From sequence record LT960552.1: DNA of 64,000 nt. One strand, written 5' to 3'. Of the stretch, positions 14,725-45,842 are shown one piece after another. The number at the start of each line of letters is the position of its first letter. Position 1 is the first letter of the stretch. Under the pieces are notes generated by a model that was not told the origin of the DNA, made no database searches, and worked only from the letters and a program-made list of their open reading frames with translations. The position numbers were made by a program, and so were the translations under genes.

Positions 14725-14753
14725 TGAAACAACTAAAAAAATTGTGGTATAAT
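14725..14753 (+). promoter_or_regulatory. TGAAAC-N17-TATAAT promoter upstream of module element 4
   Basis: TGAAAC 14725-14730, TATAAT 14748-14753. Confidence 0.8.
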
Positions 14754-14907: not shown

Positions 14908-14936
14908 TGAAACAAATCAAAAATTTGTGGTATAAT
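14908..14936 (+). promoter_or_regulatory. TGAAAC-N17-TATAAT promoter
   Basis: TGAAAC 14908-14913, TATAAT 14931-14936. Confidence 0.8.
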
Positions 14937-43743: not shown

Positions 43744-44016
43744 ATGACACATTTAAATAAAAGCAATCTTGTTGAAAACCATTCAAATATTTTGGAATTT
43801 GAATATAATGGTTGTACTTTCTACCGTAATTCAAAACTTCGTCGTTTCCTGAATGAACTATTTGGTGCTACATTAGTAGCAGTTTACAGTACTAATAAAG
43901 ATTCAGACACAAATCATGGGTTAGATTGGAGTGGTGAGGATATAGTAACTGTAACTGCAAATGGTGTTGTTTCACATCTTGGTAACTCTGAGTGGGCACA
44001 TTTTACTAAACTTTAA
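43744..44016 (+). CDS. hypothetical protein
   Basis: GAGG SD. Confidence 0.65.
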   Translation: MTHLNKSNLVENHSNILEFEYNGCTFYRNSKLRRFLNELFGATLVAVYSTNKDSDTNHGLDWSGEDIVTVTANGVVSHLGNSEWAHFTKL

Positions 44017-44035
44017 TAAATTTATAGGTTCTTAT

Positions 44036-44347
44036 ATGTTAGAAGGTTTCACTAAAGTTGGTTCTGGTCATAGTCATAATAATGTACTACCAAAAGAAAG
44101 TGGTGCATACAATGTGGTAATTATATCACGTGATGGACTTCCTGTTATTCAAGTAATGTACTTTGATAAAAATGCAGCAGATCGTTTTGAACGTGATCGT
44201 CAATGGATATATTTTAAAATTTCAGAGTATGGCTACTTCGACCATCAGCGTACCAATGGAGAATCCATTGATGCGTGGAAGAAAATTGAAGGTATTAATC
44301 TTAAAATTATTCCTGAAAAAATTGAAATTACATTCAACAGTATTTAA
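44036..44347 (+). CDS. hypothetical protein
   Basis: ORF track. Confidence 0.6.
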   Translation: MLEGFTKVGSGHSHNNVLPKESGAYNVVIISRDGLPVIQVMYFDKNAADRFERDRQWIYFKISEYGYFDHQRTNGESIDAWKKIEGINLKIIPEKIEITFNSI

Positions 44348-44364
44348 ATTACTGATGAATAATA

Positions 44365-44393
44365 TGAAACAGATTTAAAAAATCTGGTATAAT
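44365..44393 (+). promoter_or_regulatory. TGAAAC-N17-TATAAT promoter upstream of large ncRNA
   Basis: TGAAAC 44365-44370, TATAAT 44388-44393. Confidence 0.8.
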
Positions 44394-44399
44394 CAATAT

Positions 44400-44970
44400 G
44401 TAAAATTCTGTTTGATAGGGGCTTAATGCCCCTAAAGTTGTTTTTATCCTGATGTTATCGAAAAGTAGATACCAGTTGAGAAGTTCAAACAGTTCGCAGA
44501 GCAAAAGAAACCCGTTAGAAGTACGTGCAGTCAATCAAATGCGACATAAGACACCGAGATCACGGCAATGCGGCTCTATAAAGAAGTATATCTAATCATT
44601 ACTAATACTTCCTCGATAGACATATAAGATGCATCTTACCATATATGATAAGGGAGATTATGCATCGAATTTGTACAATATAGATCCGTCCAGAATTTGA
44701 TGTTATAATCAAGTACTTGGATTGATTGTATAGTCCAAGTATTAAGTGAGCTAAAACCTCGACCGTTGTTAGAACTGAAATAGGAAGAAATAGAACAACC
44801 CGCTTCCGTACTGTAAAGTAATTTTCAATACAATATTGCCGACGACTATCAGCGTCAGACTTTTCATCTCCCTGCGGGGGGATGAAATTGCCTCAACAAA
44901 TCGCGTCAGTATTATTAGGTCAAGTACAATTAAAAATTGATTTTCTTGCAACGAAGTAAAAGAAAATCCT
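44400..44970 (+). ncRNA. large structured non-coding RNA (~570 nt), unknown family
   Basis: No plus-strand ORF of 60 aa or more; at least six 7-9 bp hairpins; own RNA-gene-class promoter. Confidence 0.7.
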
Positions 44971-45032
44971 TGACTTGCTTTAGCAAGGCGAGTACAATAT
45001 ATTTCATTGAAGAAGTTATCTTTTAACAAAAA

Positions 45033-45842
45033 ATGAGGCATTCCAAAATGGGTGATATCTATTTAAAACTACGTCCAGAAGAACTTACTATGGATGTATT
45101 AAAAAACATGGATTTAAGTTCTTTAAATTCGGATGATCGTAGTCTTTTGTGTTCTATAGATGGTGCTCGTACGGTGTTGACCACCCTTGATATGCCCATT
45201 CGGTTACAAAACAAATTGAATGATATATCAAACCTTACATATGATGAATGTGTTGCTATTATAAACAATAGTACACGTGTCAGTGGTGACATTCAGCAAA
45301 AATATCATAATTATAGTATTAATTTATTATCAAAACATTTCAAAAAATTTGATCTATCTAACATCGAACGTCAAGAAAATATTAATCTTGAATTTGTTAA
45401 TAGTCATTGTAATGATATGGATATATCTGCATTCGTCCGAATTCGTATGAAACGTGGTGATGTTATGGATTTTTATGAAAATAAATCTGTTCGTAACAAA
45501 CTATTGCGTATTGGTGGTATTAAATGGAGTGAAACTAAAGATGAAATGCGTAACTCTATATTAAATTTTGCACCTAATACATTGGATAAAATTAATCCAG
45601 TACTGGATGAAATTTTCAATTTAACACTTAATAAAACTGTCTTTGCCAATTATTACGAGGATGGTAAAGGAAGTCATGGTGTTGATGCTATTGTTAATTT
45701 TTATATTAATAACTTTGATCCAGACGTAACTTATTCATGGTCTGAATTTGTGAAAACATCTATTGATAAAAATCGCGATGCATTAATTGATGTTTTTTGG
45801 CGTGATTATATCCAAGATAAAATCATTAATTGCCTAAAATAA
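45033..45842 (+). CDS. hypothetical helical-repeat protein
   Basis: ORF track; similar repeat character to 45900, 46921, 47466 and 53981. Confidence 0.7.
   Translation: MRHSKMGDIYLKLRPEELTMDVLKNMDLSSLNSDDRSLLCSIDGARTVLTTLDMPIRLQNKLNDISNLTYDECVAIINNSTRVSGDIQQKYHNYSINLLSKHFKKFDLSNIERQENINLEFVNSHCNDMDISAFVRIRMKRGDVMDFYENKSVRNKLLRIGGIKWSETKDEMRNSILNFAPNTLDKINPVLDEIFNLTLNKTVFANYYEDGKGSHGVDAIVNFYINNFDPDVTYSWSEFVKTSIDKNRDALIDVFWRDYIQDKIINCLK

Follow-up and report, generated by a model that had tools for sequence, protein, structure and literature searches.

A large structured non-coding RNA with dispersed paralogs in Rak2-like jumbo phages

A transcription unit between two hypothetical genes

What is produced from a stretch of phage DNA that follows a promoter and carries no sizeable open reading frame, and what would the product be for? 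This question is raised by positions 44379-45032 of the window, the 64,000-nt stretch of DNA analysed here. The window corresponds, at 100% identity, to the final 64 kb of record LT960552.1 (window position = record position - 288596), the 352,596-bp genome of Yersinia phage fHe-Yen9-03, a jumbo phage of the genus Eneladusvirus that resembles Rak2, GAP32 and 121Q. Positions 44379-45032 contain no plus-strand ORF of 60 aa or more, and according to the ORF list and the GenBank annotation the flanking plus-strand genes, g510 upstream (43961-44347) and g511 downstream (45033-45842), are hypothetical, the latter without Pfam match. An earlier reading made without database searches (the sequence-only reading) had described the stretch as the largest plus-strand ORF-free gap. 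This is true between ~33 and 57 kb of the window, but in the window as a whole the gap ranks sixth. The main proposal of that reading, namely a structured non-coding RNA of large size under a promoter of its own, is backed by strong strand-specific covariation and by the lack of conservation of the ORFs, and we regard a real large structured RNA gene at this locus as established with high confidence. The data show that 44365-44968 forms a transcription unit complete in itself, which specifies a large non-coding RNA containing at least 14 helices and three pseudoknots.

The promoter that had been claimed just before the RNA is present at 44365-44393 (+) as TGAAAC, a 14-nt spacer and the extended -10 element TGGTATAAT, with a predicted transcription start at ~44398-44400. 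The same promoter precedes all 26 aligned copies of the unit, and the window copy fits the consensus found directly upstream of the copies, TGRRAY-N14-TGnTATAAT. Inside the window the motif occurs eight times, always on the plus strand. In five cases a tRNA gene follows after 10-24 nt, in two the motif precedes a small RNA, and the remaining instance belongs to the large RNA unit. The earlier designation as an RNA-gene promoter class therefore fits all instances in the window, but it does not hold genome-wide. In the fHe-Yen9-04 genome, TGRRAY-N13-15-TGnTATAAT was found 37 times on the plus strand and never on the minus strand, in front of tRNA and protein genes, small RNAs and all five copies of the large RNA. 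Since a ribosome-binding site and an ORF come within 15-60 nt after ~23 of these 37 instances, the motif is a general phage promoter class and not specific to RNA genes. Two promoters of this class, at 14725-14753 and 14908-14936 of the window, each precede a small RNA. The window contains 27 Rfam tRNA matches and 23 tRNAs predicted by ARAGORN; one of the latter (1645-1720, anticodon CUA, labelled tRNA-Pyl) is a potential amber suppressor tRNA and lies directly 3' of a TGAAAC-N14-TGGTATAAT promoter. At the downstream end of the unit, a sigma-70-like promoter match (TTGACT, 17 nt, TACAAT; 44970-44998, +), the spacer of which is a hairpin covarying between classes of copies, may serve the downstream gene or belong to the RNA.

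ORFs of 34-90 aa on both strands, together with GenBank records that annotate hypothetical proteins across copies of the unit, could suggest that the region encodes small proteins, the explanation that the sequence-only reading had named as its possible refutation. Ortholog comparison spoke against it: each of the five small ORFs is interrupted by stops or frameshifts in orthologs that are 74-92% identical, including orthologs diverged by only 8-21%, and conservation tracks base-pairing, not codons. Small ORFs were rejected as an explanation of the region because they are not conserved, and we give this possibility hardly any credence. Annotated short genes across copies include GAP32_503A in GAP32, ORF014w in RaK2 and g054, g162 and g163 in fHe-Yen9-03, and several Salmonella and Escherichia jumbo phage records likewise place short genes over RNA copies. 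As the ORFs are not conserved, the "hypothetical proteins" that many GenBank records carry over these loci are probably spurious.

Catalogued RNAs did not account for the region either. With Rfam 15, no family reached its gathering score and none was found at E <= 10 on the region, and no family recurred at E <= 5 over 18 copies. The covariance models of ROOL (RF03087), GOLLD (RF01998) and OLE (RF01071) matched neither the window copy nor the 18 copies, in line with the earlier statement that the RNA could not be assigned to any of the three. RNase P RNA, group I intron and tmRNA models of Rfam also gave no match, and ARAGORN detected no tmRNA at the locus; short motif resemblances to RNase P, noticed by eye, were dropped for lack of any model score. 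Furthermore, no conserved neighbouring protein gene was found: the OLE partner genes oapA, oapB and oapC are not among the neighbours, which are unrelated hypothetical genes. A literature search retrieved no description of the jumbo-phage RNA, so that the family is undescribed as far as could be found.

Evidence for expression is weak. In three wastewater RNA-seq libraries, contigs near-identical to a 3-kb stretch around the unit were restricted to 44500-44583, 44641-44822 and 44798-44915, and a DNA library covers the flanks of the unit evenly. The RNA runs had been chosen using the unit's own sequence, and DNA carry-over cannot be excluded. A 121Q-type copy is present in four wastewater metatranscriptomes. 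A data set search found no DNA or RNA data from cells infected with these phages.

Paralogs in jumbo phages and in an E. coli island

The element noticed by the sequence-only reading is one of five dispersed paralogs in the genome, which changes the functional question. In fHe-Yen9-03 the five copies, all on the plus strand, are located at record positions 27.7, 93.7, 174.6, 259.1 and 332.9 kb, the last being the window copy, and fHe-Yen9-04 carries the same five. A profile search identified full-length copies in the Yersinia phage (5), BF (5), CBB (4), GAP32 (4), XbC2 (4) and 121Q (4), all of them on the plus strand and in syntenic places. A covariance model of the 3' domain, applied to further genomes, detected copies in Salmonella phage Munch (5), Klebsiella phage RaK2 (3) and an E. 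coli chromosome (1), and none in the genome of Pseudomonas phage PA5oct. Every Rak2-like enterobacterial jumbo phage tested had three to five full-length copies. By BLAST, the family was found in 68-70 phage records, all from enterobacterial or Xanthomonas jumbo phages of 310-386 kb, and pattern scans of viral and metagenome collections returned such jumbo phages only, with phage-like low-GC flanks in 48 of 48 metagenome matches. Plasmids gave no match; the single match among species-representative genomes, in Terriglobus, was discarded as a chance match.

The paralogs are 70-75% identical to each other. In a maximum-likelihood tree, copies group by genomic position across genera, which implies that five classes have been kept separately; the window copy falls into the 335k class together with copies of BF, CBB, GAP32 and XbC2. 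These data show that the five same-strand paralogs are ancient and that the family, the island copy described below aside, has been found only in Rak2-like enterobacterial jumbo phages. In the five-copy genomes the copies are 44-86 kb apart, an evenness of spacing on the circle that corresponds to P = 0.002-0.02; these values are not independent across genomes, because the genomes are collinear. The 175k copy retains plus orientation between minus-strand genes, next to the recombination genes gp46/gp47, and has no co-oriented gene downstream, being followed by convergent minus-strand genes and a bidirectional terminator. The tRNA genes of the same genome are clustered, not dispersed. Part of one copy is annotated as repeat_region in the UE-S1 record.

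Outside phages, the full unit with promoter, core, terminator, G6 hairpin and box 2 was found in 2 of 5,426 complete E. coli genomes, which carry identical islands. The island, of 10 kb and integrase-bearing, adjoins ffs and holds the candidate defence system PDC-M45. Its minus strand encodes DUF4326, DUF488 and dual-OB proteins, two of which match PADLOC PDC-M45 (A and C components). The copy is 80.6% identical to its nearest phage relative, forms 54 of 56 pairs and groups with the 175k class in the tree. The island backbone, a GATC-rich non-coding region of 0.7-1 kb plus two genes, occurs in 91 of the 5,426 E. coli genomes, only two of which contain the RNA, and at the RNA slot sister islands carry a type III restriction subunit in one case and a helicase fragment in another. 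This implies that the RNA unit is variable cargo and not part of the backbone. The two genes flanking the RNA encode no protein shared with the phages, and the non-coding backbone has no phage match. In that non-coding region GATC/ATCGATCG repeats are clustered upstream of the two conserved genes of unknown function, with variable defence cargo on both sides; this region could be an origin for the island itself or specify a regulatory RNA. The island copy looks like a decoy captured in a single event, for which no protection data exist.

Covariation and architecture of the RNA

The 606-nt stretch has a predicted minimum free energy of -145.7 kcal/mol (z = -5.2 versus dinucleotide shuffles). 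Independently of any energy model, 56 distinct copies were aligned and searched for stacked covarying column pairs. Conservation of the stems across homologs, on which the sequence-only reading had made its proposal depend, was borne out: 62 base pairs in 14 helices are 97.6% canonical with 108 extra pair types, and compensatory double changes occur in 46 of the 62 pairs. Sliding the partner strand by 1-3 columns reduced pairing to 40-45%. Over the helices, G-U pairs outnumber A-C mismatches by 263 to 19, which implies selection on the plus-strand RNA. In the 3' domain (55 distinct rows), 99.2% of cells were paired and 167 cells carried double changes, compared to 83.3% and 37 in shuffles, none of 500 shuffles scoring as high. 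Moreover, copies that had no part in defining the helices (RaK2, n = 3; Munch, n = 5; E. coli island, n = 1) keep the helices with new variants, for example P1 as AUGUUGGA/ACCAACAU. The window copy forms all 62 pairs. The six hairpins originally listed were all found at their positions, four of them with comparative support in the counts; column counts failed for P2, PKb and the 3' hairpin owing to length variation in the alignment.

The same counts bear on the possibility that the conserved blocks are protein-binding or recombination sites in the DNA and that the RNA structure is incidental. Box 1, box 2 and several other blocks are invariant, so that pairing is untestable there, and the UE-S1 annotation could be taken the same way. 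However, tolerance of G-U with avoidance of A-C is the mark of a single RNA strand and not of duplex DNA or a cruciform, compensatory changes are found in 46 of 62 pairs, and paralogs of 70-75% identity are poor substrates for homologous recombination. We consider a purely DNA-level repeat very improbable.

The folded core of ~460 nt, delimited by profile matches to all copies and by covariation, runs from the predicted start to the first CGTCAG box (44398-44858, +), and a conserved 3' extension continues beyond it; the window copy matches the paralog profile over its full length (E = 3.6e-176). All elements below lie on the plus strand. The 5' domain (44408-44492) is closed by P1 (44408-44415 with 44485-44492; 98% canonical, 15 extra pair types), which encloses P2 and P3. 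P2 (44416-44434; TAGGGGC/GCCCCTA, arms at 44416 and 44428) is a variable hairpin with support by eye only: its column count failed (54% canonical, an alignment artefact), and each paralog class appears to have a different self-complementary hairpin at the site. P3 (44449-44475) carries the conserved loop GAAAAGUA and is 95% (P3a) and 86% (P3c) canonical. GAA at 44480-44482 is predicted to pair with UUC at 44493-44495, bracketing the P1 3' strand, in a pseudoknot (PKa, 44480-44495) that is 100% canonical and reads GAA/UUC, GUA/UAC, GCA/UGC or GUG/CAC in held-out copies. P4 (44498-44502 with 44573-44577; 100% canonical) encloses P5 (44512-44515 with 44562-44565; 100% canonical) and an exchangeable insert (44498-44577 in all), which the alignments show replaced in other copies by a short hairpin with a conserved 11-nt loop. 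P7 (44583-44611; GAAGUAU/AUACUUC, arms at 44583 and 44605) is 92-98% canonical, with 14 extra pair types and double changes in 83-115 cells. The listed GATGCAT/ATGCATC (44628/44660) is not a simple hairpin: the loop of the small helix P8, AUGCAU at 44629-44634, pairs with the downstream strand at 44660-44665 as pseudoknot PKb (P8 and PKb, 44625-44666). A per-sequence test found at least seven different matching versions of loop and partner across copies, and both are jointly absent in the 259k class.

Downstream, the alignments delimit a module (44668-44705) with the conserved loop UACAAUAUAGAUCCGUCC (44674-44691), which lies 3' of the pseudoknot domain in two paralog classes and at both places in the E. 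coli island copy. P10 (44714-44741; UACUUGGA/UCCAAGUA, first listed as TACTTGGA/TCCAAGTA at 44714/44734) is 86% canonical, with 3-5 pair types per position and G-U 34 versus A-C 6. The 3' pseudoknot domain (44747-44827), resting on covariation and the shuffle count, comprises P11 to P15, with P11 at 44747-50/44758-61 and P15 at 44810-12/44817-19. P12 (44765-69/44795-99) crosses P13 (44776-80/44823-27) and P14 (44783-87/44803-07); pairing in each of the three is 100% canonical, with 7-8 extra pair types per helix. Judged from these sequence comparisons, the three predicted pseudoknots, PKa, PKb and P12 crossing P13/P14, are supported. The alignments then show the nearly invariant box 1, GACGACUAUCAGCGUCAG (44841-44858); CGTCAG occurs at 0.1 per kb in the genome and twice per copy, except in 121Q-type copies (CGTCAA). 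P16 (44862-44887; 97% canonical), listed earlier as TTTCATC/GATGAAA (44862/44881), joins a variable C/U-rich strand to the invariant strand GGGGGGAUGA with G6 at 44876-44881. Its G6 part has 98 G-U and no A-C combinations, which indicates RNA-level selection there. The likewise nearly invariant box 2, CCUCAACAAAUCGCGUCAG (44891-44909, from the alignments), has an AT-rich segment behind it: the 40-nt interval of lowest GC begins directly 3' of box 2 in 15 of 26 copies. Measured against the genome background, the segment reaches no further than the 5th-25th percentile. The last hairpin, GAUUUUCUU/AAGAAAAUC (44939-44968; listed as GATTTTCTT/AAGAAAATC at 44939/44960), is conserved only within the paralog class of the window copy and has no informative variation.

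Invariant blocks common to all paralogs lie between the helices, and some peripheral modules have been exchanged or moved between classes. In three paralog classes the core is separated from the 3' part by a hairpin-plus-U7 terminator; a terminator and promoter scan found no internal terminator in the window copy. In the 27k class and its orthologs in BF, CBB, GAP32 and XbC2, a terminator-like GC-rich hairpin with U7 directly follows the promoter and precedes the core. The GC content of the core is 37-42%, compared to 31.6% for the genome. The motif GTAC/AGUAC shows a 1.6-fold excess in copies, which was set aside as a signal because GTAC is over-represented genome-wide. In fHe-Yen9-04, base composition predicts 2.9 GTAC sites per kb, about half the observed 6.55 per kb, and GUAC forms the basis of many hairpin stems and terminators.

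Possible roles and relation to known systems

For the function of the unit we tentatively favour an RNA-primed, position-dependent replication origin, a role that is inferred and not demonstrated, over a trans-acting ribonucleoprotein (RNP) or scaffold RNA, which is nearly as likely. As an origin, the unit would act in place where it lies. Transcription from its own promoter would make the folded RNA, the conserved unpaired motifs of which may recruit a phage factor, and the 3' part (G6 tract, box 2, then the AT-rich segment) would stay hybridised to the template as an R-loop and prime leading-strand DNA synthesis that proceeds the way transcription runs. The replication origins of the 350-kb genome would then be the five copies, evenly spaced and in one orientation, and the copy in the host defence island would be an origin decoy. 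A further-reaching version, in which a new kind of origin uses a ribozyme-sized pseudoknotted RNA to assemble the replisome or form the primer and bacteria reuse the unit as an anti-phage decoy, appears rather unlikely to us at present.

An origin would agree with the spacing in five-copy genomes, which is more even than random (a circumstantial argument, weakened by the collinearity of the genomes), with the plus orientation of all copies, even of the 175k copy, with the separate retention of five classes orthologous across genera and with a copy number of 3-5, as expected of redundant origins. The invariant G6 tract followed by the AT-rich segment, and the reach of promoter and RNA-level selection through box 2, fit as well; yet the G6 tract is paired in an RNA hairpin and the AT-richness is modest. 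The presence of the whole unit, without a phage protein, in a variable cargo slot of the E. coli island can be read as an origin decoy, but it is a single capture, with which a decoy for a trans-acting RNA would agree just as well. Data on the replication of these phages do not exist. GC skew does not change course at the copies; it only follows gene orientation and was dismissed as an uninformative origin signal. The T4 gp59 helicase-loader domain was not detected, and neither was it in the control, so that this result is uninformative too. A further objection is that the fold is ornate and pseudoknotted and its single-stranded motifs are invariant, which known origin RNAs do not require and which is a pattern typical of ribozymes and RNP RNAs. 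The fold is also an argument for a stable RNA acting in trans, be it a ribozyme, an RNP component or a scaffold that assembles itself in the manner of ROOL, GOLLD or OLE, with the copies providing dosage or differing subunits: three pseudoknots and the same invariant unpaired motifs in all paralogs point to one shared partner or active site. The promoter class shared with tRNAs and small RNAs, the elevated GC content of the core, the presence of the RNA in RNA libraries and the abundant large ncRNAs made throughout infection by the related phage PA5oct (PMC7318152) are in keeping with such an RNA. It leaves unexplained, however, the even spacing and the plus orientation inside a minus-strand block, as well as the separate conservation of five diverged classes across genera; tRNA genes of the same genome are not dispersed in this way, no catalogued RNA matches, and the PA5oct RNAs are not detectably homologous. 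A trans-acting RNA remains a serious, if somewhat less probable, possibility.

The terminators between the core and the conserved 3' part in three of the five classes suggest yet another role, that of a cis-regulatory leader controlling read-through at an internal terminator, either by processive antitermination, as in HK022 put or Bacillus EAR, or as a giant riboswitch. That P16, which lies 3' of the terminator, is selected at the RNA level implies read-through, and in the GenBank annotation no further promoter separates the 259k and 332k copies from their downstream genes. On the other hand, the 175k class has nothing to regulate, and its lack of a co-oriented downstream gene speaks against a leader; an internal terminator is missing from the window copy, which has a sigma-70-like promoter before the next gene, and downstream genes differ between classes. 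The co-oriented operon with terminators that put- or EAR-type RNAs require is thus not present in the 175k class or at the window copy, and we consider a leader improbable. The replication origin remains our provisional preference.

To our knowledge, large intricately folded RNAs of bacteria and phages are rare, and nearly every class that we know to have been studied (ribosomal RNA, RNase P, self-splicing introns, OLE, ROOL, GOLLD) has revealed new biochemistry. For the present family the comparative evidence usual before bench work is in place, with dozens of diverged copies and three supported pseudoknots, and its layout, ancient paralogs ~55-85 kb apart in one orientation, has not been seen in known classes. 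As origins, the copies would reveal how replication begins on phage genomes of 350 kb and would tie the function of an origin to the tertiary structure of an RNA; if the RNA acts in trans, it would be a new abundant phage RNP or scaffold.

Among known origins, ColE1 starts replication from a promoter-made R-loop, as do T4 oriF and oriG. In ColE1 the folding of RNA II decides whether a persistent 3' template hybrid forms and primes replication, a process that involves a G-rich tract. The jumbo-phage unit resembles RNA II in producing an RNA of similar size (~550 nt for RNA II) from its own promoter and in its G-rich tract. It differs in a far more conserved and pseudoknotted fold, in several copies per replicon and in the lack of hybrid or RNase H data, and a promoter scan of the unit revealed no conserved RNA I-like antisense promoter. 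With the T4 origins it shares a phage promoter transcript that would prime synthesis, redundancy over a large T4-like genome and the presence of gp46/gp47. T4 origins, by contrast, consist of a promoter and a short unwinding element without a large folded RNA and are not such close paralogs, and the AT-rich element of the jumbo-phage unit is only modest. Cloned phage origins protect lactococci ("Per"). In a similar way a host-borne phage cis element could titrate replication factors, and the E. coli copy lies in a defence-cargo slot; unlike Per, it is not backed by protection data and represents one capture in 2 of 5,426 E. coli genomes.

Among large RNAs, a comparison can be made with those of the Rak2-related jumbo phage PA5oct, for which RNA-seq revealed four ORF-free transcripts (ncRNA001-004, 236-619 nt), two of them very abundant throughout infection (PMC7318152). 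The likeness lies in their being large ORF-free transcripts of a related phage; neither profile HMM, BLAST nor the 3'-domain covariance model detected homology at the ncRNA002 locus or in the PA5oct genome. OLE, too, is large, folded and highly conserved, and in both RNAs the invariant single-stranded motifs suggest protein partners, but OLE is a single-copy RNA of Firmicutes with partner genes nearby, whereas the jumbo-phage RNA has no conserved neighbour gene. ROOL and GOLLD are large ornate RNAs, often located near tRNAs in phages and prophages. The jumbo-phage RNA is like them in size (~500-800 nt), in its many helices and pseudoknots, in its location in a tRNA-rich phage genome and in a biochemical function that is still unknown, but matches neither of them in sequence or structure. 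ROOL and GOLLD have not been reported as 3-5 evenly spaced co-oriented paralogs per genome, the arrangement in which the jumbo-phage RNA occurs within one clade.
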